A program made the translations under genes and the position numbers. Below are positions 3,826 to 60,846 of a stretch of DNA of 64,000 bases, piece by piece. Positions within the stretch are counted from its first letter, which is position 1. The number at the start of each line of letters is the position of its first letter. The notes below the pieces were generated by a model, which was not told where the DNA came from, did not search any database, and saw only the letters and a program-made list of their open reading frames with translations. Origin of the DNA: Octopus bimaculoides (taxonomy: Eukaryota); contig NC_068982.1 of NCBI RefSeq assembly GCF_001194135.2, forward strand, positions 151,181,308 through 151,245,307. Reading direction: 5' to 3'.

Positions 3826-3995
3826 TACACACACACACAGACACACACACACTTACTAATTTATACACACACATATATATTTATACATATATATATACAC
3901 ATATGCATATATACAAATACACTCACACACACACACACACGCACACACATATATGCATACACACACATACATATGTATATATGTTGTGTGTGCTA

Positions 3996-9000: not shown

Positions 9001-9042
9001 TATGTATGTATATGTATGTATGTATGTGTGTGTGTGTGTGTG

Positions 9043-9078: not shown

Positions 9079-9084
<6 letters not shown>

Positions 9085-15874: not shown

Positions 15875-15940
<66 letters not shown>
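13340..15940 (+). mobile_element. RTE-clade LINE (BovB-like), decayed, 5'-truncated, with internal RT deletion and (GAT)n tail
   Basis: APE motifs (IMSLRIPIVNNQHLTL, QLDYVVT); RT motifs (DALIVIIYRKKGD..C.DHR..TLL..AGKVLAKII.NRL, GVKQG, HGDDTAL, FGLKINTSKTE, FTYL.S, RIQSATKAF); C-terminal CSICHRCCRSIAGLVAHLRACQ*; (GAT)n at about 15876-15939. Confidence 0.92.
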
Positions 15941-16175: not shown

Positions 16176-16903
16176 NNNNNNNNNNNNNNNNNNNNNNNNN
16201 NNNNNNNNNNNNNNNNNNNNNNNNNNNNNNNNNNNNNNNNNNNNNNNNNNNNNNNNNNNNNNNNNNNNNNNNNNNNNNNNNNNNNNNNNNNNNNNNNNNN
16301 NNNNNNNNNNNNNNNNNNNNNNNNNNNNNNNNNNNNNNNNNNNNNNNNNNNNNNNNNNNNNNNNNNNNNNNNNNNNNNNNNNNNNNNNNNNNNNNNNNNN
16401 NNNNNNNNNNNNNNNNNNNNNNNNNNNNNNNNNNNNNNNNNNNNNNNNNNNNNNNNNNNNNNNNNNNNNNNNNNNNNNNNNNNNNNNNNNNNNNNNNNNN
16501 NNNNNNNNNNNNNNNNNNNNNNNNNNNNNNNNNNNNNNNNNNNNNNNNNNNNNNNNNNNNNNNNNNNNNNNNNNNNNNNNNNNNNNNNNNNNNNNNNNNN
16601 NNNNNNNNNNNNNNNNNNNNNNNNNNNNNNNNNNNNNNNNNNNNNNNNNNNNNNNNNNNNNNNNNNNNNNNNNNNNNNNNNNNNNNNNNNNNNNNNNNNN
16701 NNNNNNNNNNNNNNNNNNNNNNNNNNNNNNNNNNNNNNNNNNNNNNNNNNNNNNNNNNNNNNNNNNNNNNNNNNNNNNNNNNNNNNNNNNNNNNNNNNNN
16801 NNNNNNNNNNNNNNNNNNNNNNNNNNNNNNNNNNNNNNNNNNNNNNNNNNNNNNNNNNNNNNNNNNNNNNNNNNNNNNNNNNNNNNNNNNNNNNNNNNNN
16901 NNN
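16176..16903. other. Assembly gap
   Basis: N run. Other gaps: 22352-22701, 25589-26382, 27650-27721, 34942-34951, 36932-37277, 49965-49974, 50360-51059, 60837-60846. Confidence 1.
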
Positions 16904-18530: not shown

Positions 18531-18540
18531 TATCATTGCT

Positions 18541-18711
18541 CTTCTTCTTCTTCTTCTTCTTCTTCTTCTTCTTCTTCTTCTTCTTCTTCTTCTTCTTCTT
18601 CTTCTTCTTCTTCTTCTTCTTCTTCTTCTTCTTCTTCTTCTTCTTCTTCTTCTTCTTCTTCTTCTTCTTCTTCTTCTTCTTCTTCTTCTTCTTCTTCTTC
18701 TTCTTCTTCTT
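18541..18711. repeat. Uninterrupted (CTT)57 / (GAA)57
   Basis: Counted from the sequence. Confidence 0.97.
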
Positions 18712-22351: not shown

Positions 22352-22701
22352 NNNNNNNNNNNNNNNNNNNNNNNNNNNNNNNNNNNNNNNNNNNNNNNNN
22401 NNNNNNNNNNNNNNNNNNNNNNNNNNNNNNNNNNNNNNNNNNNNNNNNNNNNNNNNNNNNNNNNNNNNNNNNNNNNNNNNNNNNNNNNNNNNNNNNNNNN
22501 NNNNNNNNNNNNNNNNNNNNNNNNNNNNNNNNNNNNNNNNNNNNNNNNNNNNNNNNNNNNNNNNNNNNNNNNNNNNNNNNNNNNNNNNNNNNNNNNNNNN
22601 NNNNNNNNNNNNNNNNNNNNNNNNNNNNNNNNNNNNNNNNNNNNNNNNNNNNNNNNNNNNNNNNNNNNNNNNNNNNNNNNNNNNNNNNNNNNNNNNNNNN
22701 N

Positions 22702-23192: not shown

Positions 23193-23374
23193 TTTATATG
23201 AACAATATAAGGTTTGATATGAGAGAGATTTGACTATTATTTCTGTTGCATCAGGAAAACAGCTAGAAGCATCGATGAAGTGTCGGAACAGGTAAATACA
23301 TACATACGTACATACATACATACATACATACATACATACATACATACATACATACATACATACGTACGTACGTA

Positions 23375-23810
23375 CATAGTGCATAAAAATCAATTTTGAG
23401 AAATTATGCTTCTCAAAACCAGAAAGGAGAAAGCTTATCCGAAGACTACAGATCCAATCCATCACCGGAACTGTGAAAATCTGTAAAACTTTCCAGAAGT
23501 TTATCATTTAAATATATATGAGCATGTCTAGTTATGCAACTATATGCATGGGGATATATACATAAACCATACAAATCTGCACATTCATAGATAGATAGAT
23601 AAATAGATAGATAGATACATACATACATACATACATACATACATACATGCATGCATGCATACATATATACATATATACATGCATACAAACAAAAATACCC
23701 TGTTGTTGATGTTGAAATTACAATGAAGAAGCCTTGGATCTTGGTTAGAAACCGGTTCTTTCTCTACTGGCAAGAAATCTTGAAATAAACTGAATAATGA
23801 CATACATACA
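23375..23810 (+). mobile_element. R4/Dong-like RLE element copy C: 5'-truncated ORF end plus 3'UTR, between (TACA)n tracts
   Basis: KLIRRLQIQSITGTVKICKTFQKFII* and a 3'UTR matching copy B (internal microsatellite, then aaaaataccctgttgttgat...gaaatcttgaaataaactgaataatga). Confidence 0.9.
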
Positions 23811-24384
23811 TACATACATTCATACACACACATACATACATACATACATACATACACACATACATACATGCATACATACATAAGCGTATGACGTAATTTC
23901 AAGCTTTTGGGAGATATATTTAGCTTGCATGCTTAAGAAATTTTGGGAATGTGAAATGCGACGATAGCTGACAGATAAATGATTAATTCTAACATGCTTC
24001 TGATTCTCTTTGCATTCAGATTTATTAAACCTCAGTAATAAAGGTCAGATAAATGAACAAATTGTGTTTATCATATACTTTAAGAAAGTTTCCAGTACTG
24101 AGTCATTAGTTTCCTGTTGTCTGCGCTCAACATGTTTGAGATCGCCCCTCTTCTAGTTCTTCCATACATACAATTTATTTAAAACTATGAATTCCTTCCC
24201 ATATATAATGTCAGTATCTTTAAACTTGTTCTTTTGCCGAGGTGTTTTACAGAGATTGAGTGAAAGCTACGTTATACCTATTTTTTAAACGTGGGCTTGT
24301 TATCTCGGTCACTTTTTACACAGCCATTCACCTATTAAATATTAAAAACGCCCTGTAAGATTTTATTCTTTCACATTATGTGAT

Positions 24385-24517
24385 GTATGTATGTATGTAT
24401 GTATGTATGTATGTATGTATGTATGTATGCATGCATGTATGCATGCATGTATGTATGTATGTATGTTTGCATGCATGCAAGTATGTATGTATAGATAGAT
24501 AGCTAGACAGCTAGAAT

Positions 24518-24550
<33 letters not shown>

Positions 24551-25190
24551 ATAGATAGATGGGCAGGTAACATTTCCGTCTCTCTAAATTAGTCAATTAT
24601 TTGTACTATGTACAGATTTTTGTATTCGATATCATTCACATATAAACAAAAGTAACTACATTGCGGTAAGTAATTTTTTCCGGTTTCTTTGGCATAAGTC
24701 ATAAATATGAACAGCTTTTTAACATGGCAGAATCGTTAGCATGCTGGGTGAAATGCTTAGCGGCATTTCGTCCGTCTTCACGTTTTGAGTTCAAATTCCA
24801 TCGATGTAATAATTACCAGCTGAGTACTGGGGTTGGTGTAATCAACTTACCGCTCCACTCGAAATTGCTGGCCTTGTGTCAAAATTTGAAATATATACGT
24901 GAATCTTTGTCGCTTTTGGCGGTGCTGACCTAACCGAGATTTAATATGATAATGTAGAAAATTTTATTGTTTTAACCTCAATAATAAATTAAAAGAATTT
25001 ATATAAAATTTATTCTGCATAGTTAATTTTCTTTGGCTCCTATCCTTCAAAACGTTTTCAATAAAAACATATTTAATCTTGCTATACAGTTCTATATCAA
25101 ATATAGGATTGTTTATTACGTCGGTGAATTTATTGAATTCCATTTTAACATATTTCTTTTAAGTTATCACTTTTATGGCACAGTACACGT
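24385..25190 (+). repeat. Local duplication, copy 1: (TATG)n(TAGA)n plus about 630 bp of unique-looking sequence
   Basis: Shared blocks with 26550-27300, e.g. ttcacatataaac.aaagtaact, ccgagatttaat..gataatgtagaa, ttgttttaacctcaataata, gtttattac.tcggtgaatt. Confidence 0.85.
24725..24893 (+). mobile_element. tRNA-derived SINE (family 2) with internal deletion
   Basis: tggcagaatcgttagc head, B-box GTTCAAATTCC, tail ggccttgtgtcaaaatttgaaa; same family as 47211 and 62487. Confidence 0.85.
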
Positions 25191-25588: not shown

Positions 25589-26382
25589 NNNNNNNNNNNN
25601 NNNNNNNNNNNNNNNNNNNNNNNNNNNNNNNNNNNNNNNNNNNNNNNNNNNNNNNNNNNNNNNNNNNNNNNNNNNNNNNNNNNNNNNNNNNNNNNNNNNN
25701 NNNNNNNNNNNNNNNNNNNNNNNNNNNNNNNNNNNNNNNNNNNNNNNNNNNNNNNNNNNNNNNNNNNNNNNNNNNNNNNNNNNNNNNNNNNNNNNNNNNN
25801 NNNNNNNNNNNNNNNNNNNNNNNNNNNNNNNNNNNNNNNNNNNNNNNNNNNNNNNNNNNNNNNNNNNNNNNNNNNNNNNNNNNNNNNNNNNNNNNNNNNN
25901 NNNNNNNNNNNNNNNNNNNNNNNNNNNNNNNNNNNNNNNNNNNNNNNNNNNNNNNNNNNNNNNNNNNNNNNNNNNNNNNNNNNNNNNNNNNNNNNNNNNN
26001 NNNNNNNNNNNNNNNNNNNNNNNNNNNNNNNNNNNNNNNNNNNNNNNNNNNNNNNNNNNNNNNNNNNNNNNNNNNNNNNNNNNNNNNNNNNNNNNNNNNN
26101 NNNNNNNNNNNNNNNNNNNNNNNNNNNNNNNNNNNNNNNNNNNNNNNNNNNNNNNNNNNNNNNNNNNNNNNNNNNNNNNNNNNNNNNNNNNNNNNNNNNN
26201 NNNNNNNNNNNNNNNNNNNNNNNNNNNNNNNNNNNNNNNNNNNNNNNNNNNNNNNNNNNNNNNNNNNNNNNNNNNNNNNNNNNNNNNNNNNNNNNNNNNN
26301 NNNNNNNNNNNNNNNNNNNNNNNNNNNNNNNNNNNNNNNNNNNNNNNNNNNNNNNNNNNNNNNNNNNNNNNNNNNNNNNNNN

Positions 26383-26549: not shown

Positions 26550-26559
26550 CATACATACA

Positions 26560-26591
<32 letters not shown>

Positions 26592-26712
26592 CATACACAC
26601 ATACATACATACATACATACATACGTACATACATACACACATACATACATACATACATACATACATACATACATACAAGTACGTACGTACGTACGTACGT
26701 ATGTATGTATGT

Positions 26713-26757
<45 letters not shown>

Positions 26758-27300
26758 CAGATAACATTTCTGCCTCTCTAAACTAATCATTTATACTTAT
26801 TATTTACATAATTTTTAAAATCATGTATCACAGTTTTATAACTAATGAAGAGTGCCATAACTTGGAACCTCTTTTAGAGACGAAAATTTTTAACATATTT
26901 TTGTTTGCAGTATTATTCACATATAAACGAAAGTAACTAAACTGTGGTCAGTACACTCGGCAGAATTTTCCCGCATTCTTTGGTATAAGCCATGGATATG
27001 AATGGTTTCTAAAATATGTGCGAATTGCTGTCTTTTTTAGCGGCGCTTATTTACCCGAGATTTAATAAGATAATGTAGAAGATTTGTTGTTTTAACCTCA
27101 ATAATAGAAGAATTTACACAAATTTTTCCTCATACGTAATTTTCTTTGGTTCCAACCCTTCAAAGTATTTTCACTAAAAATATTATTATTTTTGCTATAT
27201 AATTCTTTATCAAATAAGAACTGTTTATTACATCGGTGAATTATTAAATTCCATATTAGAATATTTCTTCTAAATCGGTAGCACTTTGATGATACTATAT
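26550..27300 (+). repeat. Local duplication, copy 2 (lacks the SINE)
   Basis: Collinear with 24385-25190 except for the SINE interval. Confidence 0.85.
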
Positions 27301-27805: not shown

Positions 27806-28605
27806 ACCTTGACCGACCAGTCCGTCAGGCGTCCATTTGACACCGCTCGCACGGGTACCACTCGACAACTGCGCGGGACCACCGTTTATCGGTGAGCTGG
27901 GCGACGTGTCCAGCCCATCTAAACTTGCTGCGTGTATATTCTACGATGACATCCCTCACGCTGGACTTCTGTCTGATGACATCGCTACTGATGTGCTCCC
28001 TCAACGAGATTCCAAGCATTGATCTCTCCATGACTCTTTGAGCCGTTACCAATCTCTGCTCTTCTCTCTTTGTTGTAGCCCATGTTTAACTACCATATAA
28101 CATTGCAGGTAGAACTGTGCTATTGATGAAGTTGGCGCGGGCGGTCCTGTCCAACCTTCCCTTGAGCACATCCCTTATGCCATTAAACGCCTTCCATCCG
28201 GCCCTTATTCTCCGCAAGATCTCTTTTTCGATGTCGCGGCACATATTCACTTCCTGTCCCATGTAGACATATTCCTTTACCTCCTCTATTTCATCACTGC
28301 CGACCACCATTCGACCTGTTGGTACGTTGTCGGACTGCATGAACTTCGTTTTCATGCGGTTCATCTTGAGATCTACTGCAGAGCTTTTGATGTCGAGCTA
28401 CGTCAGCATGGTCTGAAGCTGAACCGTGGTTTCAGCGATGATTACGATGTCATTAGCAAAGCGGAGGTGGGTGAGTAGCTCGCTATTGATATTGACACCG
28501 CCTTGCCAGTCGATGCCTCTGATGATCTGCTCGAGACATGCGGTGAAAAGTTTTGGAGAGATCGTATCTCCTTGCTTCACTTCCTTCTCGCACGGGTGAT
28601 GACAG
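27806..28605 (-). mobile_element. RTE-clade LINE 3' half (RTE-1-like)
   Basis: VKQGDTISPKLF, HLRFANDIV, MNRMKTK, YVYMGQ, RRIRAGWKAF, VLPAMLYGS, MERSMLG, KFRWAGHV. Confidence 0.93.
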
Positions 28606-28679
28606 CAGATCTATGTCTGTGGTGCATCCGGAATTTGCTTCCCTGTGTATATATATATATTTATATATATATATATCCT

Positions 28680-31008
28680 CCACTATTCATGACCTCATTT
28701 CATCCTCCCGTCTCCCTCCCACTGCCTCCAACCTCATTGTCCACACTCCACGCCCTCCACTATTTACTTCCTTCCCAAAATTCACAAGCCCAACAACCCT
28801 GGCCGCCCCATCATCTCCGTCTGCAACTGCCCCACAGAAATGATCTCCAAATACTTCGACCGTGTCCCCCTAGTGGCTTCCCTCCACTCCCACGTACACG
28901 ACACTAACCATGCTCACCGTCTCTTTAACTCTTTCTCCTTCCTTTCTGGCCCCTCTAAATTTCTGTTGACTCTTGATATCAAGAGCTTACGTACGGTAAT
29001 CCCACACATCGAAGGAATTCTTGCGATGAAACACTTTCTGGATCTTTGACCTGACCCCCTACCTAACACCTTCACACTTCGTCTACCTGAACTTTTTCTC
29101 TCCCTAAACTGTTTCTAGTTCGCGGGGTTTTTTACCAACAGTTCTCGGGAGTGGCCATAGGAACGAGAATGGTCGCCAACTCTGTGAACCTGTTCGTTGG
29201 CTATATTGAGGCCCAAATATTCTCACAATTCACTGGTCCCACCACCGAACTATACGGTCGTTATATCGATGTATGTATCGGCGGGACCTCAATTTCCCGT
29301 GAGTAGCTAGAGTCCTTCCTCTCTTTTGTCCAATCTTTCCATCCGGCCTTCGAATTTTCCTGCTATATATCTAACACTTCCGTCGAATTTCCTGACATTT
29401 CTGCCTGAATAAACCACTCCGCTCTCACTACTTCCATCCGCTACAAACACACTGACTCACACTCCTACTTTAACTTCTCCTCCTCCCACCCTACCCACAC
29501 CAAGCTCTCCATCCCCTATTCCAAATTCCTTCGCCTGAGTAGGCTCTGCAGTGACAACCATGACTTTAAGACTAAGTCTAAACTCATGGATCGCCACTTC
29601 ATCCTACATGGATATCTCCTCACCACTGTCCACACTGCCCTTGCCAGGGCATGATCTGTGGACCGCGCCTCTGTTCTTTCTCCTCGCACCCGCCCTGCCG
29701 TTGCCCATCCCCCATTTCCCCGCACCTATCACCTCTCCATACTGCCCCTCCAACGCACCATTCTCCGAGCACTCCAGAGACTCCAGTCCAACCCTTCCAC
29801 CTCGCACAACTTTCCCGACCTACTCCTTCTCTCCTTTAAACGAGCCCATAACTTGCGTACCTCCTGATCCACAGTTTCTTCCCTAAGCCCACCTCCCAGC
29901 TTAACTCGTTCCCCTGCTCCCGCCCACGGTGCTCTCTCTGGCCTTCCCTGTACATCGGTCAAACGGGACGCCGCTCGGCTGACCTGTTCGCGGAGCACCT
30001 CTGAGACATCAGACTCAGCAATGACACCCCAGTTTCGCGCCATTTCCGCTCTACTGGTCATTCTCTACAACACCTGTCTGTGTTCGGACTGTCTTTGCAC
30101 AGGGGCCATTCGGACTCCTGCATTCGCCGTGAACAGAAATGAATCTTCTCTCTTCGCTCCTTCGCTCCACGTGGGCTAAACTTACCTCCTCTCTTCATCT
30201 GATGCCAACCTCACTCCCTCTCTTAATTTGATACCAGCCCCACACCATTTCACACACACTAGTACTGACCAGTTCCAGCACCCACACTACACACCCACAT
30301 AAATCTTCAATAGCGCCACCATACATACCACTATATGAGCAGCCACGTACATTGTTTAACTCCGTACACACACCACACATCATCATTCACACTCTCACAC
30401 CCACACAAGAACACAATACCTGAGCACAGACAATATATACACCTACACCTACATAAGCACATAATACCTGAATACAGGCTATATCTACATACACACGCAA
30501 CACGCATTAACATACGCAATATACATAGACAATAACTTTCACCCACATATATACACCATATACATGCACACTGTTTGGTCACAGATACACACACTCATGT
30601 GCACACATCAACTGCTACACGCGCGCGCGCGCACTCACACACGTCAGAGTCACTCGCCCCTATTCACACACACAAACACTTACACACTCACGGACACCAT
30701 TTTCACATACACGCACGCGCACCTTCTCTTGTTGGGATCACTGGTACTTTATTATCTTCCTCATACAATCTCTTTTTTTTTATCATTATCTCCCTTTCTT
30801 TCAACCTTTTTTCTTTCAACCATGCAAAAATCGTTGAAATCTAAAGTTTTTTTCATTCTTTCTCTGTTTATTTTCTCTTATTCCTTTCTGTTGAAGCGCG
30901 CAGGCTTGAAACGCAAAAGACTTTTTCATTTTTCCCGAGCATTAAACTAATACACTTGCTTGTTGTTCATACACCTGTCTTCGTGATTTGTTTTTCTATA
31001 AATTTCAA
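28680..31008 (+). mobile_element. Penelope-like element: RT, GIY-YIG endonuclease and terminal repeat, inactivated
   Basis: YFLPKIHKPNNPGRPIIS, LDIKSL.T.IPH, G.A.GTRM, RYIDV (YIDD mutated), YK.TDSHSY..FSS.HP, YIGQTGR, PVSRHF, PRGLN; low-complexity tract 30280-30720; terminal segment to about 31008. Confidence 0.93.
30884..30918 (+). ncRNA. Degenerate minimal hammerhead ribozyme-like motif in the PLE terminus
   Basis: cttt-CTGTTGA-a-gcgc-gcag-gctt-GAAAC-GCA-aaag: stem I cttt/aaag; core A6 and the NUH U are mutated; stem II is imperfect. Confidence 0.5.
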
Positions 31009-32426: not shown

Positions 32427-32535
32427 ACACATACATACATATATACATACATACATGCATGCATGGATACATACATACATGCATACATACATACATACAT
32501 ACATACATACATACATACATGCATGCATACATACA

Positions 32536-32566
<31 letters not shown>

Positions 32567-32644
32567 CATACATACGTACGTACGTACATACATACATACA
32601 TACGTATGTATACATACACATCCATATATATGTATGCATGTATA
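32427..32644. repeat. (TACA)n tract at the 3' end of RLE copy B
   Basis: Direct reading. Confidence 0.95.
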
Positions 32645-32796
32645 TCATTATTCAGTTTTATTTTAAGATTTCTTGCCAATAGAGAAAGAGCCGGTTTCTA
32701 ACCTAGATCCAAGACTCCTTCATTGGAATTTCGATATCAACAACAGGGTATTTTTCTTTGTATGTATGTATGTATGTATGTATGTATGTATGTATG

Positions 32797-32828
<32 letters not shown>

Positions 32829-34703
32829 CGTGCAGATTTTGTATGTTTTGTTTTATGTATGCATTCATATGCATATAGTTGCATATCTAGACATGTTCAT
32901 ATATATTTAAATGATAAACTTCTGGAAAGTTTTACAGATTTTATAGTTGCAGTGATGGATTGGATTTGTAGTCTTCGGATTATCTTTCTCCTTTTCGGTT
33001 TTGAGAAGTCTAATTCCTCAAGATTGGTATTTAGGCAGTGTGATACATATCCCAGGGCCCCAATAATTACAGGTACAAACTCGAACTTGTAATCTGGATA
33101 GAGTAACTGCAGCTTTCTTAATATTTCAGCGTAGGCATTCTCTTTTTCTCTTTTTCACTGATCTTCAGTTTTATGTTAACATCCGACTGTACATTGCTTC
33201 TGTTTTCTATCCAAAATCATTATATCAGGTCTATTGTGCTTTTATTTTATTGAGGTTTTCGCTGTGACATTCCATCAGTACTCCTTTTTACTATGAGTGG
33301 CTATGGCTTCTACCATACAATGGGTTCTTATTTCTTTGTCCTCGGGGTTATCATTTCGACAGATTTCATTATAGAGTGTCCTAGTTACTACATCATGTCT
33401 CATCGGAAAATAATATCGTGATGACATTTTCGAACAACTGCTTATGATATGGGTGACATCTTCGGTGTTGACTCCACAATGTCTGCATCGGTTGTCACAT
33501 TTTACTGCTATTCCTGCATCTCTATTCTTGTTGTTCCTGGATTGCAAACACTCGCTTCGAAGTGGGAGGTAGTAATCCAGCTATTGGTCCATAATAGACT
33601 ACTTTGATGATCAATGTTATTAACATTTCGGAGCTTTTTACTAACATGCATAGTCTTCTCATATATACTTATCCTTTCATATATCCTCATCTGATGATAC
33701 GTTGCAGTAGAGTCGTGCGACTTCTTTGGGAATGAATTTAAGGTTTATAGACAATGAATGTTGCGCAGGGTGCTGCCTCCAATATCCTATGATGTTAGCC
33801 TCATGTATGCAAACTTGGTCAAGTGATGGACTTCGACACTCAGTGGTTAAAAGATGTTGCCGAAGGGATATGATACGACATTCAAAAGAATTTTGGATCG
33901 ATGTTAAGCCTCTTCCGATTTGTTTTCGTTTTAGGTGGAGGAGGTCTATGTCACTGTTTATGTGGAAATTTTGTCTCCTTGTTAGTATTTTTCGGGTTTT
34001 TACATCATTGGCTCGGACCTCATCAAGCGTCCAATCAAGCAGCCCAAATGTTGGTATGTGTACTTGCATTGCAAATTGTGGGCCGCACGCAGTTTTATTG
34101 AATGTAGGAAGTTCTGAGGTCCAAATTTTCTTTATTCAGCTGTAATATTCTTTAGTGACACGTGTTGTGTTACAGGTGCCATTGTAAGATATGTTTTCAT
34201 CCACTCCTAGATATCTGTAACATTCCTCGTCTGATATAGGGGAAACAGTCAAGTCATTGATGGATATGCTGCTAGTCTGGTTTACAGTATTCCCCCTTTT
34301 CACAGCCATATGTCAACATTTATCCTGACCAAACTCCAACCCTCCATCCTTTGAGAATGTTGTAACTAGATCAAGGCTCTCTTTCATCTCGTGCATATTC
34401 TTTGCATAAAGTTTTAAGTCATCCACAAAAAGAACAGTGTGTAATTTTGGTACTTCTGTTTCCTTGTGAACCAGTGAGATATTCTTCTGACTCCCTTAAC
34501 ATGAATGGCAAGGGGTTTACAGAAAATATAAACAACATCACAGAGAGGCTGTCCTTTGCAATACTGTATTCTATCAGTAATAATACAGTCACTCTTAGTG
34601 TTTAATTTCAAGATGGTGGCCCACGATGAAGTCAGGTCAGTTATGGCTTTGACTATGCTCACTGGAACTTTAGCAAGTTGAAGGGCTTCTAGCATCCGTG
34701 AGT
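32645..34703 (-). mobile_element. R4/Dong-like RLE non-LTR retrotransposon, copy B (5'-truncated, intact 3' end)
   Basis: RT (MDD.KLYAK, YRYLG); CCHC finger CRHCG..EDVTHIISSC..RYYFPMRHD; RLE NRPDIMILD; PVIIGALG; stop at 32907-32909; 3'UTR with internal (TACA)n at 32760-32824. Confidence 0.95.
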
Positions 34704-34704
34704 C

Positions 34705-34925
34705 TACGTATGTATGTATGTATGTATGTATGTATGTATGTATGTATGTATGTACGTATGTATGTATGTATGTATGTATGCATGTATGTATGTATGTATG
34801 TATGCATGTATGTATGTATGTATGCATGCATGCATGTATGTATGTATGTATGTACGTACGTACGTATGTATGTATGTATGTATGTATGTATGTATGTGTA
34901 TGTATATATATATATGTATGTATGA
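34705..34925. repeat. (TATG)n tract abutting the 5' junction of RLE copy B
   Basis: Direct reading. Confidence 0.95.
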
Positions 34926-35149
34926 TGTCGTACAAGTACTTNNNNNNNNNNTATATATATATAACATGTATATATGAGTGCGCCCCCTCCACATACACAC
35001 ATTAATATCTGAATTTTATCTGGGACATTTGCAATAAATTTGACAGTTATCCACTGGATAATACTCTGTAGTTTTTCTTTAAAATACATTAACATATACA
35101 GGTCAAAATACAACAATAATAATGATAAAATGAATGTATATATATCAAC

Positions 35150-36931: not shown

Positions 36932-38620
36932 NNNNNNNNNNNNNNNNNNNNNNNNNNNNNNNNNNNNNNNNNNNNNNNNNNNNNNNNNNNNNNNNNNNNN
37001 NNNNNNNNNNNNNNNNNNNNNNNNNNNNNNNNNNNNNNNNNNNNNNNNNNNNNNNNNNNNNNNNNNNNNNNNNNNNNNNNNNNNNNNNNNNNNNNNNNNN
37101 NNNNNNNNNNNNNNNNNNNNNNNNNNNNNNNNNNNNNNNNNNNNNNNNNNNNNNNNNNNNNNNNNNNNNNNNNNNNNNNNNNNNNNNNNNNNNNNNNNNN
37201 NNNNNNNNNNNNNNNNNNNNNNNNNNNNNNNNNNNNNNNNNNNNNNNNNNNNNNNNNNNNNNNNNNNNNNNNNNNNNATATATATATATATAAATCGCTG
37301 TATGCGTGTTTGTACGCCTTTCCTTTATAACTATTTATAAAGAAAGAGTTGGTTCTAACACAGGAACAAAGCTCTATCGCTGAAACTTAGAATTTGGATA
37401 AAGCAATCAATAAGTGTTGAACAATATTAGTCTCGCTTACAGATTGTATTTGCAAAATGCATATTTAGCTGGTATTATTTTTTGCCTGAAAGCACTAACC
37501 TTTAGAGTTTGCTACTTATACATTTGCTTACATACTCGGGTGCACCAATAATTAGGTATAAATGTGAAGCTGTACTCTGGGGAGAACAGCTATAGATTTT
37601 GAAGTGGTTATCCATGAATATTCTCTTTTTTTTTTAGCGATTTGGAAACAAATAACAAATAATCATATCGAGCCTGTTATGCTTGTACTTGGGGGAAAGT
37701 TTGATAGGGATGTTCCCCCAAAATTCTTTGAGCTAATACGTATTTATGTATTCAATAACTGGAGCGTTCTTTTTACTCATTTCTTTTTAGTCATTTCTGT
37801 GTTTGACATTCTATATCATTTCAGTGACAACCTTCTTCTTCATTGGAAGGTATTTCAATGAGGATATTTTTAGCCGATGCTGTCCACATGTGCAATGACC
37901 TTCTCAGAATGTGATATGATCAACTCTCCCACTTAGATCTTGGGGGTTTAAGGATCTCACTGTATCTTATGTTCATTTGTATTTTGTAGCGATCATATGC
38001 TCTTGGATTGAAAAAACGTAGTCTTCGAAATATGACATATTGTAACGGAAGCGAGCACTGGTAAGGTTACACTTAATGTTAGCATCATCCTCAAGATTAC
38101 GGGAGACATACTCAAACATCTCTATTTTTTATGCGGAGCATTTCTCTTGCAAGACAAGTACACTAGTCTAGTAACTCTAATGTTATAGGGAAGGTCACAG
38201 GAATAATATTTCTTGATGAGTTCTCTACTAATCCAAAAGACCAAAAGAAGTTGTTCACTTTACTTCTGATGAACTTATTCTTGCTGCTGCAGTTTAGGAG
38301 ACCCTGTGTGACATGTACTAACTTTATTTAGACATATTCTTCCTCTTGGCTCTTCATCAGCGATAAAACTGTTTCTGTGAAAACTTCCACCTATTACTAG
38401 GATTTTCCGGATTTTAGTAGGTATTCTCTTCAAAACTCTAAAGTATTCGAGTTGTTGGTATCATTACTGATGTTACAAATGCATTGTGGGATATTGCCTT
38501 GTAAGAAGAAAGCATCGACTACCACATACGTACTTTTGAGACTTGGTATAATATTCTGTCTTTCTTTGTTAACAGTATCTTTTGTATATGTTTATGTTAG
38601 AAACTAGATATTATAGCACA
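36400..38620 (-). mobile_element. Possible very old PLE remnants
   Basis: Minus strand SGQTGRK near 36510-36530 (GIY-YIG YIGQTGR-like) and ILYQVSKVRMW*S..S near 38510-38560 (RT Y.Q..G..MGS-like); weak. Confidence 0.2.
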
Positions 38621-39618
38621 CCTATAGAAGAGAGGAGAGACTATAGAGATAAGGTTTGACGTTCAGAAATCAGTTATTCCATGTTAATTTTTTGTTGGTA
38701 TTTTAATGGAAATAACTTTTTAAATGTATAATATACTTACTGTGAACTTAGCTGTGTAAAATGTCAGCGAAAATGGTAAAGAAGTTGAATACTCTAACGA
38801 TGACAACCCAAAATGTTCAACGTCATATGGCAAGATGAAATGAAAATATGAGCATATCCTTCTGCAAATTAAGTTCTTACTGCTGCAAAATGTGATGAAA
38901 CTGCGATAGGTTTCGCCCGGTAGATCACTTTTCACGACCGTCAGATATTCGGCATGCAAAGACTACAAGGGCATGGTCACTGGAAGAAAGAAACTCCCAA
39001 AAGGACCAACTTAAGTACACCTAGTACCGGACATTCCCGAAAAAACTTAAGTGTACAAAGATCAGTTTGGCAGGAGCAGAGAAAACTGCAGCAGATCGAC
39101 AACACTCGAAGACGCTCATTGCCTTATGTATTTCACAACTTTGGAAAATTCATTCATATCTATTGGCACAAAATAGGGAAATCGGTAAAATATCGAAAAC
39201 AATTTTGGTATCCTACAGTTACAGTTACATTGTCGTAATTAACAAGACCCTTTTAAATTCCGGTTACGTCACTTTATGCTATCAATAAAATAATGCCAAC
39301 TAGAAGTATAAATTGTGTGATTGATGTAACCGACTAAAACCCTTGAAAGTGATGCAAGAATGTTAGAATCCAATGACTGAAACCAGTAAGAAAGAATAAT
39401 TAGATAACACTGCTGCGTGTAGCAAAAATTAATTGAATATCTCATTCATAAACTGTCTTCAATGTGAGTGACGCATGAAACCATCAAATGCGGAAGTAAC
39501 GTAATAATCAGATTATATGACTTTGTTACAGAAGACCAAGGTCAATATGAAGTAACTGAAGATTCAAATGAAATATCTATACATTTTAATGTATTCTCAC
39601 AGTACATAGCATAAACTA

Positions 39619-39720
39619 TTGAAATTCCAATGAATGAGCCTTGAATCTAGGTTAGAAACCGGCTCTTTCTGTTGTAGCAAGAAATCTTGAAATAAACTGA
39701 ATATTGACATACATACATGC
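39619..39720 (+). mobile_element. R4/Dong-like family copy D: 3'-terminal 100 bp with catacatacat tail
   Basis: ttgaaattccaatgaa.gagccttg.atctaggttagaaaccggctctttct..tagcaagaaatcttgaaataaactgaata matches the termini of copies B and C. Confidence 0.88.
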
Positions 39721-39733
39721 ATGCGTCCATGCG

Positions 39734-39943: not shown

Positions 39944-40277
39944 GACCTACGTCGGTTATTGTGACAAGTGTTCCAGTTGATATGATTAATGGAACAGCCT
40001 GCTTGTGAAATTAACATGCAAGTGGCTAAGCGCTCCACAGACGCGTGTACCCTTAAGCTAAGTCTCAGAGAGATTACCCTTAAGGTAAGTCTCAGTTCGA
40101 TACAGTGTGACAAGTCTGGCCCTTTGAACTACAAGTACTACTCGTTTTTGCCAGTTGAGTGGACTGGAGCAACGATAAATAAAGTGTCTTGCTCAAGGAT
40201 GCAACGAGCTACCAGGAATCGAACTCACGACCTTATCATCATTAGCCGAATACCTTACCCACTAAGGCCAGCGCCTT
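39944..40277 (-). mobile_element. tRNA-derived SINE (family 3)
   Basis: A-box TGGCCTTAGTGG, B-box GTTCGATTCC (40215-40224), central ccttgagcaagacactt; homologous to 57119-57395. Confidence 0.88.
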
Positions 40278-40370
40278 GGAATGTACACACACACAAACTT
40301 GCGTGCGCGCGCACACACACACACATGCATGCATCATATATACATATAAGCATGCATATACATATGTGCC

Positions 40371-40454: not shown

Positions 40455-41654
40455 TTACGCTTTGTCTTATGTATGTGTACACAATCATATGTTTGCAAAT
40501 CTATATGTCTATATATGCCCTTTTTACAAACTAAAACGTTTTGAATGTTTTACATATAACTGACTCTTTGATGGTTTGGGATGCAATTAAGAGTAGCATT
40601 TCTGGTTCTGTGAAACCCAGCTATTTAATACCGGTTATGAGGTAATTATTCACAGATCTATTCGTTCCAATAATTATTGATAGATTTCTAAATCTGTAAG
40701 TAGAATAGAGTAGCTGCAGATTTCTCATCAGTTCGGCATACTTTTTTTTTTCAATAACATTTAACATTGTTAACATTTGGGCAACTGATTTCAGGCACTG
40801 TGAATTTCTTTTCTTAGATCAAAGTCATTGTCATCGTTGTTTGTTATTCTTGCACTTTATTGAAAACTCAATAAAAATATTTTAGCCGTATTCTTTCGTA
40901 TTATATTTGATTATGCTCCCCTCATCACTGCAAGTTCTTAAATTTGCATCGTCAGGTTTGACCTTTCACCGGATTTTGTTATATATTGCTCAATCTATGC
41001 TGTCATATTTAGGTATCATTGTAATAACATTTTCGGGCATCTATTTATGATGCGAGTGATATCGTCAGCGTTAATTCCACAGTATGCAATTGTTATCGCA
41101 TCTAGGTGGTTTACTTGCATCTCTATTTCGTTTGTGCGTCAGATATTTTATTTTCTCCAAAAGCATATCATTCAAAGTAAGAGCTAATATTACGGTTGTT
41201 ACTTCCAGATAGATACTATAATTATTGAAGTTGCAGCAACTTTGAGGCTTTTTGGGACAGTAGCCAACCATGAAATTCGCAGATATGTTCACAGATTCTT
41301 TTTAGTAAAGTTCTGCAAATTCTCTAGGTATATATCCTTAGTCATCAATGAAAATTATTTTTGAGTAGTTCTTTCCCATGGCTGGATTTCAGCATTTGGT
41401 CGTTCGTATATGTTGTCGAGGGGATATGATGCAATATTCTGAGGCCGTTTGAAGCGACGGCAAACTTCTGCTACATGATCTTTAAGTTAAAGTAGTCTCC
41501 TCAGCGTTGATATGAAAATATCTGGTTTGGGTTAGCAATTTTCGAATTTGAATAGCCGTATCTCATCCAAGTAGCCTCAAATGCTGATATTTGTACTGAT
41601 ACAGACACATACATACATACATACATACAGACAGACAGACAGACAGACAGATAG

Positions 41655-41689
<35 letters not shown>

Positions 41690-42665
41690 CACTCACACAC
41701 GCACACGCGTATCCAGGCGTACGTACGCATGTACGCGTTTATGAATGCATCTTCTATTTTTAATTAAATGAAGTCTTACTCTAAGGAAGGAGCTCCATTG
41801 TTAACAGATGTTAACAAAATGTAGTTAACAAAAACACTGTCACATATTGAACTTGAGAAAAACCTTACTGTCCACTTACAGATTGCATTGTTAATGTGAG
41901 TGTTAGCTGGTTGATGTTTTTTTTCCTTGGAAAACCCAGCTTTTCCAGGTTATCACTTCGGCGTTTACAACCAAAACCAAGAACATCAATGATTTTGGTA
42001 TAAAAGTGTATTAAGGATAATTAGATTGCATGGTCGGTTGTAATGGAGAAGAGATATGGAGAATTTTTCTTCATTAAATTTTAGGTTGCGTTATTGTTTT
42101 GCAATCAGGTGTGTCTAATTTGATGTGTCATCTTCAGGTCACGAGGATTCACAAAAGAAGGTATATTAGGTGGAAGGTATATGTTGGTCAGCAAATGTGT
42201 AACTAGGTTTGGTTGTTGGTTTTACTTGAATATTAATGAGATACTTAACCATTAGTTTTGAGAATGAGAGGTTTAGAGCTCGGAGTTCAGTCCAATGTTT
42301 AAGTCTTTGTAATTAGGTGTGTTGGCTTTTTGGTAATAGAGTTTTTAAGGGTTTACAACAGAATTTTAAAAAGGTGTTAAATTTTAGTCTGTTGATAGTT
42401 TTGTGTTATTTATTGTCACAGCACAACCATACAAAAATAACGAACTTTATACCAATAAATCTTGCAACAATGCTATTTTCAAGAAACAAATTCAGAACTG
42501 AAACTCTAAATTAGTCTTTTCATAATAAATTCATACCGTACCAACAGTATTGAGTAAACCTTCAGTTTAATGTAAAACTGCGTTTTATCATTACATAGAA
42601 ACATAATTGCTTTTATTATTTTACATAAAGTCAAATTGTTTTTGTTATAACACACACACATAGTA

Positions 42666-48386: not shown

Positions 48387-51282
48387 TGCGTATACTCGCA
48401 CGCACAATTAATCTTATGAATGCATAACCCAATACACATGACCACACATGAACACACACACACGCGCACACATACACACACACACGCACACACACATATA
48501 CATACAAAGTATACGGACAGGATATATGCTAATGCTCTCCCAAACTACAACCATATAGTTGCAAACTATACGCATTATTTAATATTAATACGACGCTGAC
48601 ATACATACATGCATACATACACATGGTTAACATAAAGAATAGTATACTAAGTTACCGATTACAAACGGTATGTGTATATCTCACAATCAATAACGAAACA
48701 ATAATAATGCAAATGTCACCGAAAAACTATACAATGAATTTAAACACAGAGAATATATAATTATGCATATGAAATAAATGTAAAAACAATAATAATAAAA
48801 GTAGAAATAAAAAATATAATAAACTTTATCCAATACCTATACAAAGAGAAATATTAGTAACAAAATGAAAAAATACAAAAATATAAGAAAAGATAATATG
48901 AAATGAAAAAGGAAAATGCTTACACATAGCTGCACGTATTGTACAGATAAAATGACACGATAATTGATAAAAGACAGTAAAAGCAATCTGATAAATAATT
49001 TGTACAACATTTACGAAACAGACCGCGAATACAAGATGTACAAGCAATGAGCCAAAGATCCACGAATAAGAACAGTTAACAGTTTCCCAATTAGGAATTA
49101 CGACATTCGGAAGATTTATTCGGAATATAGTCCCTATATAAACATAAGTAAATGAAGTCAGTAATCAGCAAGTTAAGATATATACAAAGTCAATCACAAT
49201 AACAGAACAGTCCATGATATTGTATTCTTCACTTACATTTTCCTTTTATTGCAAAATATGCACCAAATTCAATAAAAATATGAAGGTTACTCTGATTACT
49301 CTGCATAAAATACAAAATATTAATATTTTTGTAGATTAAGTAGGCATAACTCTCGCCCCTGCCTTTCAATCTCAGTATTAAAGCTACACGTAGTATTGCT
49401 GTAGTACGAATGCTGCGTACATTTCTACAACAACGTTTTCTTTACGTACTATGAACTCAACTGGTCGTCCTGTCCGATCTTCAACTTAAAGGCTGAAATC
49501 TCCACATCTGAATTTTGCAAACTATCTTCTGCAAGTTCTTTCAGTCAAGCATTCTTTCCCATAAACTGAGTATATGTTTCGAGTCGCTTCGGCTGCAGAG
49601 TTTCCTTTTTTGTACTCATAAAAGCATAATGTGCCTTAAATGCTCTTTAGATACTTCCATGTTAGAAAGGGTTTCAATCAAAGAAATTTTAATTCTATTA
49701 TTCTGTAAAATAATATTTAATTAGTTTAAATGTACACAAATGCATAAAAATAATTTTTAATTCCACTAGACATTCTAAAATATTAAATTTCATTCAATTT
49801 TAAAAGCGGTAAAATCGGACGGGTTGTCCTGATACTCATTTAGGGATGTCCTGATATTCATTTAGATCCAAATGGATGGAGAGTTACTGAGTATGTAAGG
49901 AACTCTTCATCCATTAGGATGTAAATGAATATACATGAATATATGTCAATTTTGTCCTGAAGAANNNNNNNNNNATATATAAATTGAGTTTCTGTATTTA
50001 CACTCTCCATTTTCTTTATGCTTTATCTTTAAATTCTATTCTCCTATATCGGATAGATTAAAACTTCTGTAACTACAACTGGAACTTTATAAGGGTAAAA
50101 CGCTAATGTCGAAAAAGAACCAACAATAAACACTAATACTGTGAAAGAGGTACCGCTTTCCATTCGAAACTTCATAATCACTCGTTACATACGTACATAT
50201 ATACATACCAACATACACACACAGACACACAGACACAGACACACACACAGACACACACATGCACACGCGCACACACACACTCATATACACACATATTTCT
50301 TATATATATATATACATACATATATCTATATACGTATATATATATATATATATATATATNNNNNNNNNNNNNNNNNNNNNNNNNNNNNNNNNNNNNNNNN
50401 NNNNNNNNNNNNNNNNNNNNNNNNNNNNNNNNNNNNNNNNNNNNNNNNNNNNNNNNNNNNNNNNNNNNNNNNNNNNNNNNNNNNNNNNNNNNNNNNNNNN
50501 NNNNNNNNNNNNNNNNNNNNNNNNNNNNNNNNNNNNNNNNNNNNNNNNNNNNNNNNNNNNNNNNNNNNNNNNNNNNNNNNNNNNNNNNNNNNNNNNNNNN
50601 NNNNNNNNNNNNNNNNNNNNNNNNNNNNNNNNNNNNNNNNNNNNNNNNNNNNNNNNNNNNNNNNNNNNNNNNNNNNNNNNNNNNNNNNNNNNNNNNNNNN
50701 NNNNNNNNNNNNNNNNNNNNNNNNNNNNNNNNNNNNNNNNNNNNNNNNNNNNNNNNNNNNNNNNNNNNNNNNNNNNNNNNNNNNNNNNNNNNNNNNNNNN
50801 NNNNNNNNNNNNNNNNNNNNNNNNNNNNNNNNNNNNNNNNNNNNNNNNNNNNNNNNNNNNNNNNNNNNNNNNNNNNNNNNNNNNNNNNNNNNNNNNNNNN
50901 NNNNNNNNNNNNNNNNNNNNNNNNNNNNNNNNNNNNNNNNNNNNNNNNNNNNNNNNNNNNNNNNNNNNNNNNNNNNNNNNNNNNNNNNNNNNNNNNNNNN
51001 NNNNNNNNNNNNNNNNNNNNNNNNNNNNNNNNNNNNNNNNNNNNNNNNNNNNNNNNNNNTATATATATATATATATGTATATATGTGTGTATGGGGAGGC
51101 AATATGATAATTTGTATCAATAACTGCTTACTGCATCGAAATCATTCACATTTTCTTCAATGCGCTGACACAGGCTTGGAAGTGGATTTAGAATATCGCC
51201 TGAAAGACACATAACAGCACGTAGCTCTTATTTATGGAAAATGAATTATAATAATACAATGAAGAAATTCAAAATGATACAT

Positions 51283-52300
51283 TACAAGAAACGTTACTTG
51301 TCTACGAATGAATATCATATATTTAAGTATTTCTACAAACAGATTGGTTGTTAAATACTGTATTTGTATTTTAACAGTATGAAATTTTTTTCCCACTTTC
51401 TGAAATCAAGTATTAAATGTAGGAAGTTGCTTGTAACCACTTCTGATTATGAACAGTGGTTAGCTGTTGGGTGGAGCTGGAACCTAGCTGCATGGTAGAA
51501 TAATTCTATTATATAAGAGATGTTAGTTTTAGCCTTACTAAGTAAAACATCATCTGATGAGAAACATTTTAATATTCAGATCATCGAATTACAATGAATA
51601 AATAAAAATTATGTTCCTTGTGTTACAAAGCAACACATGTTTTATTGGAAATTAAAACTAATATAGTTTCTTGACTTCACAAACATGCATTTTAGAAAGA
51701 AATATATCAAATATATTTCTCTGAAAATGATGGGTTAATGTGTAAAATAATACTGAAATTGTTGCGGCGAGCTATTTAGTACAAACAATAAATTCATGAC
51801 GCAGAAATCACAGTACAGTATCGAAATTGAGTTTCTTTTGAATCTCTGATATCCGCGAAGACGTCATAAATATGAAAACATTACATTTTATTCATCTTCT
51901 GTATATGGGCTGAAGAAATCCGCATCATACAGAGCAATTAAGACTAGTAATATAAAAATACTAAGTATATTCAATACACCGTCTTTACATACAGATATCT
52001 ACCATTTCTGCTACCCGCATACCATTGCATACACACCTCACACGACAATCAGCTTATATATTACAGCTCATTTACAAAGCAACTTAATTACCACAATTCA
52101 ATTCATACATAACTTTTCCGAATATATTTCGAAGATATTGAAAATATTGCAATTCTTTTCAACTAGTTCATACGAATAACGAATTTGCTGCCTTTTCTTC
52201 CAGAAAATATTTAAAAAACCAGCAATCATAAAATTATATACATATAGTGTTAGATAGGGAGATGGACATACATACATACATACATACATACATAGATACA
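51283..52300 (+). repeat. Left arm of a long inverted repeat
   Basis: Reverse complement of 53222-54177; e.g. gtatattcaatacaccgtctttaca / tgtaaagacggtgtattgaatatac. Confidence 0.93.
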
Positions 52301-53221
52301 TACATAGGCCGGGAATAGTGAGAGAAGAATAGATAGTTCTGGAAGAGAATAAGTTTAATAATGAAAGTACTGAGGGAGGTGGTAGTAGAGGTGGACAGTT
52401 GGGAGGTGAATAGGAGTGGTAGGATAGAGAGTGTTTGAATCGTAGTGAGTTGTGTTGGATTTGTGTCTAGGTATCAAAGTTTAGGGATAATAGCTATAGA
52501 ATTAGATACTAACCTTTCAACCTTTCCCTCCCTTTCTATTTACTCTTTGTATTCAATTTTATACACTTCTGTATACTTCAGTACTCCCCCTCAAATACCG
52601 ATCCACATTTATTATTCTACTAACCACTGCTATCTTGACCACCAACTCACCCGCACTCTGTCCACCTCCTTATAAGTTCTCTCATACCTTTCTACGTACC
52701 TTGGTAATCTTCGTCTGCCACTGAATTAGGCATTTTATCTCCCTCAAATAATAGCCATTCCTTTTCTCACTATCTCAACTTCCAATAATTCTACTATCTA
52801 CCAACATTCTTATGGATCTACGAGCCCCAGAAACAGTTGTTTGACTAATACCACCTTTCCACCCGCCACTTAATTTTCTCTCCCTTTTGTACTCTGTGTA
52901 AGTTGGACCTATTAATATAAATATCTATATATTTATACTTAAAAATTCATCATCTGAAAGTCTCCAATTTTTGCTTTCTCTTGTTTTGCGTGTATACATT
53001 TATACATATTTTGTATTTAATACCCAAACTATTATATTTAATATATTTGATGTATCTAATTTGTTTATCCCCATAATTGCACCTATACCCGCTCAACCTG
53101 ATCCCTCTTACCACTATTCTTTATCTTGCGAAATCGATACCCTGTAAATACATCGGTGTCTAAGTTTGAAACTTTTGAACACTACTAAGTGTCTTCTTTA
53201 CTGGATCTCACCTGTGGACTA

Positions 53222-54177
53222 CATGTATGTATGTATGTATGTATGTATGTATGTATGTATGCATGTATGTATGTATGTATGTATGTATGTATGTATGTAT
53301 GCGTGCGTGTATGACAATCTACCTATCTAACACTATATATATGTAATTTTATGATAGCTGGCTTTTCAATATCTTCTGAAAGAAAAGGCAGCAAATTCGT
53401 TATTCGTATGAACTAGTTGAAAAGAAATGCAATATTTCCAATATCTTCGAAATATATTTGGAAAGGTAATGTGTGAATTGAATTATTGTAATTAGGTTGC
53501 TTTGTAAATGAGCGCTAATATATCTGCTGACATTTGCGTGAGGTGTGAATGCAATGCTATGCGGTAGCAGAAATAGTAGATATTTGTGTGTAAAGACGGT
53601 GTATTGAATATACTTAGTATTTTTATATTACTAGTCTTAATTGCTCTGTATGATGCGGGTTTCTTCAGCCCATATACAGAAGATGAATAAAATGTAATGT
53701 TTTGATATTTATGACGTTTTCAGGGGTTTCGATACTGTGTTGTGATTTATCTGTGTTATGAATTTACTGTTTGTTCTAAATGGTTTGCCGCAGATATTTC
53801 AGTATTATTTTACACATTAATCCATCGGTTTCAGAGAAACGTAAGGAACGTCATTTTTATTTATTTATTGTAACTCGATAATATGAACATTTAAATGTTT
53901 CTCATCGGATGATATTTTACTTAGTAAGGGTGAAACTAACATCTCTTGTATAGTAGAATTATTCTACCATGAAGCTAGGTTCCAGCTCCAACTAACAACT
54001 AATCACTGTTCATAATCAAAAGTGGTTACAAGCAACTTCTTACATTTAATACTTGATTTCAGAAAGTGGGAAAATAATTTCATATTGCTACTATACAAAA
54101 TACAGTATATAAACAATCAATCTGTAGAAATACTTAAAGATATGATATTCATTCTTAGACAAGTAACATTTCTTGTA
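53222..54177 (-). repeat. Right arm of the long inverted repeat
   Basis: Collinear with the left arm from the inner (TATG)n to the outer ttcttgta; lacks about 100 bp present near 51620-51720. Confidence 0.93.
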
Positions 54178-60349: not shown

Positions 60350-60634
60350 TTGTTGTTGCTGTTGTTGTTGTTGTTGTTGTTGCTGCTCTTCTTCTTCTTC
60401 TTCTTCTTCTTCTTCTTCTTCTTCTTCTTCTCCTCCTCCTCCTCCTCCTTCTTCTTCTTCTTCTTCTTCTTCTTCTTCTTCTTCTTCTTCTTCTTCTTCT
60501 TCTTCTTCTTCTTCTTCTTCTTCTTCTTCTTCTTCTTCGTCTTCTTCTTCTCCTCCTCCTTCTTCTTCTTCTTCTTCTTCTTCTTCTTCTTCTTCTTCTT
60601 CTTCTTCTTCTTCTTCTTCTTCTTCTTCTTCTTC
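60350..60634. repeat. (GTT)n followed by (CTT)n with CCT interruptions
   Basis: Direct reading. Confidence 0.97.
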
Positions 60635-60846
60635 TCGCTGTATTTCTTCCAACTTCCATCCTATCCCATCGTTTCTTCTGTTCTTTCCGTTTTTGCTTTA
60701 TTTTCCTTCCTCAAGCCTCTGTCTGTGTGTATGCATGCATGTACACACACACGCACACACACACACACATACACACACAGAAACACACATACACACACAC
60801 AAACACACACACAAACACACACACACACACACACACNNNNNNNNNN

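Follow-up and report, generated by a model that had tools for sequence, protein, structure and literature searches.

A 64,000-nucleotide stretch of the Octopus bimaculoides genome (contig NC_068982.1, positions 151,181,308 to 151,245,307 of the forward strand; the whole stretch is referred to here as the window) is microsatellite-rich eukaryotic DNA with nine N gaps, and contains four copies (A, B, C, and D) of one family of long interspersed nuclear elements (LINEs). We conclude that these copies are very probably relics of a LINE with a single open reading frame (ORF) and a restriction-like endonuclease (RLE), whose lineage is the sister of the (TAA)n-flanked Dong-type elements and whose integration is specific for (ACAT)n·(ATGT)n microsatellites, always in one orientation. 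Copies that are full-length, or 5'-truncated at any point, abut sense (ACAT)n upstream and run into it downstream. The protein, as encoded by relatives with intact ORFs of ca. 1150-1220 residues, comprises an N-terminal three-helix domain, a reverse transcriptase (RT), a CCHC zinc knuckle, and a PD-(D/E)xK nuclease that can be superposed on that of R2. A tetranucleotide-specific RLE family had been proposed in a first-pass annotation of this DNA; the RLE features of the protein and the sense (ACAT)n flanks of the relatives support that proposal.

The target was tested in the DNA around relatives in other genomes, which are 35-45% identical to the window family at the amino acid level. At five loci with intact ORFs (L001, L002, L005, L087, and L092), sense (ACAT)n was found on the 5' side. 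It occupies both flanks at L002, L005, and L087; the contig of L001 ends before the 3' end of the element, L092 combines its 5' array with a short 3' sense tract, and L004 has (ACAT)n on the 3' side. Three loci of the octopod Argonauta hians (L089-L091) are same-orientation chains, in which full-length and variously 5'-truncated copies are separated only by (ACAT)n. The order at L089 is unique sequence-(ACAT)11-3' fragment-(ACAT)12-fragment of a second family-(ACAT)5-fragment-(ACAT)4.5-full-length element-(ACAT)4-fragment-(CATA)12-unique sequence. L090 is similar, and L091 contains three successive copies whose 5' truncation points differ. One Argonauta family, included among the copies of L090 and L091, aligns to copy B with 65% nucleotide identity over 1.5 kb, and ends in ...aaataaaattgaacagag/acatacat (here and below, the slash marks the junction); the end of the window family, ...aaataaaactgaataatg/acatacat, is closely alike. 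When window and relatives were taken together, 16 of 17 5' junctions abutted sense (ACAT)n, the exception being copy D, and no flank in the opposite orientation was seen among the 17, although the counts are not independent, since in the chains one array is the 3' flank of one copy and the 5' flank of another. Several copies that differ in their 5' ends thus have one and the same repeat on either side, always in one orientation, and this pattern corresponds to the operational definition of a microsatellite-specific LINE given by Kojima and Fujiwara (as summarised in PMC3812793 and PMC4640811). Since relatives outside the window show the same sense flanks, the association with (ACAT)n is a property of the lineage and not of the window.

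Copies within the window were searched for by blastn with copy B, together with pairwise alignments. The four copies of the first-pass annotation were recovered as one family, every pair being approximately 89% identical at aligned positions, with numerous indels. Copy B (32645-34703, minus strand) was delimited by blastn, by tblastn similarity to proteins P0001, P0003, and P0005 (39-46% identity), and by its frames and stops. Its 5' end corresponds, by protein alignment, to approximately residue 538 of an ORF of about 1150 residues, and it contains the C-terminal half of the RT, the linker, the CCHC knuckle, the RLE, and the 3' untranslated region (UTR), with at least five frameshifts and several in-frame stops. 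Copy A (6925-9000, minus strand; blastn, with protein similarity down to about 6925) begins at approximately residue 295: positions 8232 to 6972 align to positions 1-1228 of B, and a further 770 bp extend 5', to 9000. The 3' part of copy A is gone and the copy stops inside the CCHC region, which indicates that it was cut or deleted after insertion. Copy C (23379-23800, plus strand; blastn and pairwise alignment) comprises the last 40 or so codons and the 3' UTR; its 5' end lies at approximately residue 1109, and 23380-23800 matches positions 1667-2059 of B. Copy D (39617-39707, plus strand; blastn) is a 91-bp 3' end only, without a 5' tract, which matches positions 1968-2059 of B and lies wholly within the 3' UTR. 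Because stops and frameshifts occur throughout, the copies are taken to be old and dead; judged from their sequence, all four are nonfunctional relics, with a pairwise divergence of ca. 11%. A search with the 116-bp 3' end beside the unassociated arrays of the window revealed no extra short copies.

Copies A, B, and C had been described as 5'-truncated at different points, each next to a TACA tract in its own orientation, and this was seen at all three junctions. The junction of copy A reads ...catacatatacatacata/agaggac, and its 5' flank (9001-9037, minus strand) is a short (TACA)n of ca. 27-37 bp, followed by (CA)n to position 9079. The junction of copy B reads ...catacatacatacgtag/actcacgg; the flank (34704-34928, minus strand) consists of ca. 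55 units of (ACAT/TACA)n on the element sense strand, with an array of 220 bp at 34708-34928, and includes TACG and TGCA variants. The 10-N gap noted beyond this tract is real (34942-34951, 14 bp past the array), and the length and upstream context of the array are therefore uncertain. At copy C, the junction reads ...gtacgtacata/gtgcataaaa, and the flank (23296-23378, plus strand) is (ATAC)n of ca. 21 units, 83 bp. All three tracts read ACAT on the element sense strand. Copy D has no clear 5' tract, as had been noted; only tacatagcataaac is found there. The window contains 14 strict (ACAT)n arrays, which make up 2.5% of its non-N bases, and 6 or 7 of them touch a family copy. Given these arrays, a random oriented junction would fall within 5 bp of the correct array end with p ~1.3e-3, and the chance of three of four junctions at the correct array end in the window is P ~8e-9.

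The protein is that of an RLE-type LINE. Translations of copies A and B match Pfam RVT_1 (E-value 1.7e-8 for copy A). A stitched translation of 686 residues yielded 160 homologues, all with PF00078, the best of which was only 42% identical. Many of these homologues have an intact single ORF (overall range, ca. 1130-1220 residues), and the single-ORF structure was read from such relatives, the window copies being too truncated to display it. RVT_1, and sometimes also zf-RVT, are the sole Pfam matches of the intact relatives, and the apurinic/apyrimidinic endonuclease (APE)-type domain Exo_endo_phos was matched by Pfam in none of the relatives. The only relatives with a solved structure are R2 retrotransposon proteins (E-value 3e-28, with the CCHC motif aligned). 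In 23 intact-ORF homologues, the CCHC residues, the P-D pair, the second D, the K, and the two glycines of the IIGALG block are invariant (P1041, D1042, D1063, K1073, G1101, and G1104). An AlphaFold model of the C-terminal 247 residues had a predicted local distance difference test score (pLDDT) of 91.6, and its top seven Foldseek matches were all R2 (TMq 0.70-0.76, root mean square deviation ca. 3 Å, probability 1.0). The RT match, the R2 relatives, the invariant CCHC, PD, D, and K residues, and the C-terminal model together identify the element as an RLE-type LINE.

The CCHC, PD..D, and IIGALG motifs, which had been claimed for copy B, were all located on the minus strand. The RT active-site box FVDDLKLYA (motif search; Pfam RVT_1) lies at 34403-34429, followed by the zinc knuckle CRHCGVNTEDVTHIISSC at 33434-33487, whose C/C/H/C residues are invariant in homologue alignments and align to the CCHC of R2. 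The RLE catalytic region extends over 33145-33238, with HNRPDIMILD in frame (RPD, 33209-33238), and VIIGALGYV, with the conserved G..G of the RLE domain, lies at 33044-33070. The second half of the nuclease motif, the D..N..K part (SDVNIKLKISEKEK, 33145-33186), is in a shifted frame after a small deletion. At the other end of the protein, the N-terminal 85 residues of the relatives are conserved, with W19, G42, and W51 (W-x31-W), and have no Cys/His zinc-finger pattern; an AlphaFold2 model of this domain (pLDDT 83) contains three helices. The domain has no Pfam match and no significant Foldseek match (best TM 0.49, to 6taz). A Myb/SANT-like N-terminal domain without zinc fingers has been described for R4/Dong elements (PMC7998251), and, as neither Pfam nor Foldseek recognises the domain, a "Myb-like" label rests on that description.

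Metagenome contigs were scanned with protein alignment, which gave 80 more loci, and simple repeats adjacent to the ORFs were tabulated. Distant relatives, 24-30% identical to the window element, have (AAT/TAA)n on both sides, and three closer relatives (L007, L008, and L088) are flanked by (ACTT)n. A neighbour-joining tree was built from 626 columns with Kimura distances and 200 bootstraps; it has no outgroup, is midpoint-rooted, and contains no named R4, Dong, HERO, or NeSL reference. One clade (100% bootstrap) unites the window copy and the Argonauta element with all elements flanked by (ACAT)n or (ACTT)n, separate from the (TAA)n-flanked set, and (TAA)n occurs only in that more distant set. 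A core group with the window copy, the Argonauta element, and two ACTT elements also has 100% bootstrap, but nodes within the core are weak. The kinship with Dong-type elements, argued indirectly from the (TAA)n-flanked sister group in a tree of this composition, is accordingly probable. ACAT is found on most branches and ACTT in two places; ACAT therefore appears to be ancestral in the clade, and the distribution of the repeats suggests at least two shifts from ACAT to ACTT, repeats that are one base apart. A broader proposal, that these elements are an undescribed, widespread Dong-sister lineage whose target moved from (TAA)n to (TACA)n to (TACT)n by single-base steps, those two or more shifts included, is put forward tentatively, and we lean slightly against it. 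As a separate observation, the Dong-like locus L006 (P0109) has tandem copies with sense (ATT)n between them, at 34-54 and 3822-3866; the other (TAA)n-type relatives carry the complementary repeat, (TAA/AAT)n, on their sense strand.

The composition of the tree also bears on an alternative in which the targeting is real and the family belongs to another RLE clade, for example HERO or NeSL-like, rather than to R4/Dong. Some HERO families and the NeSL-related Togen target microsatellites (PMC4640811), and both the missing reference elements and the unmatched N-terminal domain fit such a placement. In the tree, however, the closest elements outside the clade are a large set with (TAA)n on both flanks, and published work gives this repeat as the Dong target in insects, molluscs, and cnidarians (PMC7998251; see also PMC3812793). 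The three-helix, W-x31-W N-terminus without zinc fingers resembles the one described for R4/Dong (PMC7998251), and in octopus genomes the RLE class annotated as abundant is Dong-R4 (PMC13282606, PMC8967140). We therefore consider placement in another clade unlikely.

The 3' ends bear on a second explanation, namely that the family is an ordinary LINE without target specificity that happens to end in an (ACAT)n microsatellite, the upstream tracts being coincidental or the tails of older neighbours. LINEs commonly have microsatellite tails and seed microsatellites (PMC3812793, PMC2887409), and a short repeat closes many CR1, L2, and RTE elements. In the present family, a sense repeat, however short, follows the 3' end of every copy, and copy D has this repeat without a 5' tract. 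The earlier claim that all three preserved 3' ends run into CATA repeats held for copy C, which is followed by 83 bp of (ACAT)n (23801-23882, plus strand, ca. 21 units) and then by unique sequence, and held only loosely for copies B and D. Copy D runs into a (CATA)3-like tract (39708-39725, plus strand), then into GC-rich bases and (TG)n. Copy B has a tail of ca. 20 bp of imperfect, sense, (CATA)-like repeat (32624-32644, minus strand), beside which lies a 175-bp array that reads ACAT on the plus strand (32429-32603) and is thus inverted relative to B. A tail, however, accounts for the 3' side only, whereas nearly all the 5' junctions counted above, from many truncation points and several hosts, abut sense (ACAT)n. 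In the window, what precedes the A, B, and C arrays is unique sequence, in which neither the family's own 3' terminus nor the tail of another element is found. The sister lineages are likewise two-sided, with (ACTT)n and (TAA)n. A non-specific element with a tail is therefore very unlikely. Passive accumulation, in which copies insert anywhere and survive in or beside ACAT-rich, low-constraint DNA, has been used to explain Drosophila Waldo-A and Waldo-B near CA repeats (PMC3812793) and could draw on the frequency of (ACAT)n arrays in the window, half of them unrelated to the family, but it predicts both orientations and loose proximity where exact abutment in a single orientation is observed, and the control retroelements of the window, one RTE-like and one Penelope-like fragment found by eye (two elements only), touch no ACAT array, so we regard it as scarcely credible.

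Several observations weigh against site-specific integration into (ACAT)n and the lineage assigned to the family. Copy D is without a 5' tract and the 3' end of copy A is gone; (ACAT)n arrays are frequent in the window, half of the 14 touching no copy, and the host genome itself contributes only four copies. Many relatives lie on short contigs that end inside the repeat, the arrays of the chains serve as 3' and 5' flanks at once, and the internal nodes of the tree are weak (ca. 20-60%). That the arrays existed before each insertion is presumed. Simple insertion into one array does not account for the 3' flank of copy B, most of which is an inverted array. The same layout, a short sense (TACA)n tail and then a long inverted (TGTA)n, is present at the 3' end of L092 (6428-6546), in a different host. 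TACG patches are self-complementary and are present in several flanks, including those of copies B and C; ACAT in either orientation might result from their decay, which would give the layout of B and L092. Alternatively, the layout may have arisen by inverted duplication during repair, or the short sense tail with its inverted array might be the trace of a side reaction of integration that has so far escaped notice.

By analogy with R2 and Dong, integration into (ACAT)n would proceed as follows. The N-terminal domain would read the repeat and the RLE would nick the (ATGT)n strand. The nicked 3' end would pair with the (ACAU)n tail of the RNA and prime reverse transcription, incomplete reverse transcription would produce the 5' truncations, and the cDNA end would be rejoined within the same array. 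Reading of the target by the N-terminal domain, nicking by the RLE, and target-primed reverse transcription (TPRT) are predictions for this clade. Repeated hits on one array give head-to-tail chains.

The internal array of the 3' UTR, reported earlier, is real and occupies an equal position in copies B and C. In B it consists of 17 perfect units, (TACA)17 (32759-32826, minus strand), and in C of (ATAG)n and (ACAT)n (23581-23691, plus strand). The terminal domain of the 3' UTR (32645-32758, minus strand, ca. 115 nt) is common to B, C, and D, and contains a predicted hairpin (ca. 32684-32721), which is also present in the much more divergent fragment F described below; covariation in the hairpin is weak, with one compensatory change in 14 predicted pairs. 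The possibility that the internal array is a nested chimera of a tail and a fragment was rejected, since the 3' UTR of the Argonauta relative is contiguous without an array. That contiguous 3' UTR, together with the occurrence of the terminal hairpin in fragment F, makes expansion in place the simpler reading.

Two other RLE-LINE fragments are present in the window. Fragment E (40534-41613, minus strand) is very divergent, ca. 25% identical to residues 768-1155 of P0003, and matches only proteins of the tetranucleotide clade. At its 5' junction lies (TG)n(CTGT)n(ATGT)n in its own sense (41601-41706), and (TG)n is found near its 3' end (ca. 40300-40335), so its target may be a different repeat. 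Directly after this (TG)n, a tRNA-derived sequence resembling a short interspersed nuclear element (ggcgctggccttagtgggtaagg...gttcgattcctgg; ca. 40120-40295, minus strand) is found, in which ARAGORN called no tRNA. Fragment F (37300-38569, minus strand) is ca. 30% identical to the relatives; its 3' UTR has the gttagaacc..ctctttct hairpin region of the main family, and beyond its 3' end come (TA)n and then a gap of 346 N. An inverted non-coding pair of ca. 0.9 kb (51283-52306, plus strand, and 53223-54177, minus strand), 85-89% identical, has (ACAT)n at its inner ends; it could be an inverted duplication that includes the microsatellite, or two unrecognised (ACAT)n-tailed copies.

Of the two control retroelements, the RTE-like fragment (ca. 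27900-28620, minus strand; RFANDIVIIAET..., ...MERSMLGISLREHI...) and the Penelope-like fragment (ca. 28700-30100, plus strand; FLPKIHKPNNPGRPIIS...) adjoin each other at a (TA)n tract, and the pair accounts for the GC-rich, C-skewed block at 28-30 kb. Near-perfect trinucleotide arrays are also present: (TCT)57 at 18540-18711, (TCT)83 at 60387-60635, and (GAT)22 at 15875-15940. Compound arrays flank the 794-N gap (26550-26763 and 24377-24560), with (CATA)n-(TACG)n-(GTAT)n-(ATAG)n at one edge and (CTAT)n-(ACAT)n at the opposite edge; they hint that TACG, through CpG decay, may give rise to ACAT in both orientations. Simple repeats lie at the edges of most assembly gaps (16176-16903, 22352-22701, 25589-26382, 36932-37277, 50360-51059, and others), and, with the 10-N gap near the 5' array of copy B among them, the array lengths given here for the window are lower bounds. 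Nearly all window ORFs of at least 130 residues are artefacts of N gaps and simple repeats, and Rfam and tRNA scans of the window gave no hits.

Dong itself (Bombyx mori; DongAg, DongBg; R4 clade) resembles the window family in its single ORF, RT, CCHC motif, C-terminal RLE, and lack of N-terminal zinc fingers, as well as in orientation-specific microsatellite insertion, with the repeat on both flanks and head-to-tail chains. It differs in its target, which is (TAA)n rather than the tetranucleotide (ACAT)n, and the window family, only 24-30% identical to the (TAA)n-flanked set, falls in the separate clade (100% bootstrap) that includes (ACTT)n. R2 (28S ribosomal DNA; 8gh6, 8ibw, 9dou, and 9nl3) shares the RT similarity given above (E-value 3e-28), and its C-terminal linker, CCHC, and RLE fold superpose on the model (TM 0.70-0.76); a sequence-specific target and TPRT are presumed, by analogy, to be common to both. 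In contrast to R2, the window family has a microsatellite rather than a ribosomal DNA target, has no N-terminal zinc fingers, and is 13-16% identical to it in the RLE region. An Rfam search (E-value up to 0.5) of the relatives' 5' UTRs at eight loci likewise detected no ribozyme resembling that of hepatitis delta virus, nor any other, the only matches being microsatellite artefacts (mir-297). Waldo (R1 clade; WaldoAg1, WaldoAg2, and WaldoFs1) targets ACAY repeats, which include (ACAT)n (PMC3812793), but it belongs to a distant clade and has an APE-type endonuclease, whereas the window family has a C-terminal RLE; the shared microsatellite is therefore a convergent choice of target. Togen (NeSL-related, from fish; (TG)n) and the microsatellite-specific HERO families are RLE LINEs with microsatellite targets (PMC4640811) that differ from the target of the window family, and on present evidence the clade is apparently different as well.

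Thus, microsatellite-specific RLE LINEs (Dong, Togen, and some HERO families), the ACAY-targeting Waldo, and the abundance of Dong-R4 in octopus are already known (PMC3812793, PMC4640811, PMC13282606). No description of RLE elements specific for (ACAT)n or (ACTT)n was found in full-text literature searches (Repbase not covered). The mechanism is conventional, and what is added is the clade-wide pattern and the suggested single-base shifts of target. If the proposed sequence of shifts is true, these elements form a natural series in which target reading by an RLE LINE, and the way in which it is retargeted, could be worked out. R2 and other site-specific RLE LINEs serve as models of TPRT and are under development for targeted gene insertion (PMC13580325, PMC13586686). 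Closely related proteins of the same architecture whose targets, (TAA)n, (ACAT)n, or (ACTT)n, are different and very simple would be useful for mapping the residues responsible for specificity.

For cephalopods, the finding would tie Dong-R4, a LINE class that is abundant (PMC13282606), to one microsatellite in particular. Since an insertion splits one array in two and brings a third in its 3' UTR, the family could multiply ACAT arrays. It is a plausible source of the local excess of TACA arrays, and in octopods the lineage may be a real source of the many ACAT arrays. The association is relevant to repeat annotation, to assembly, where gaps fall at these arrays, and to explaining the microsatellite content of these genomes.

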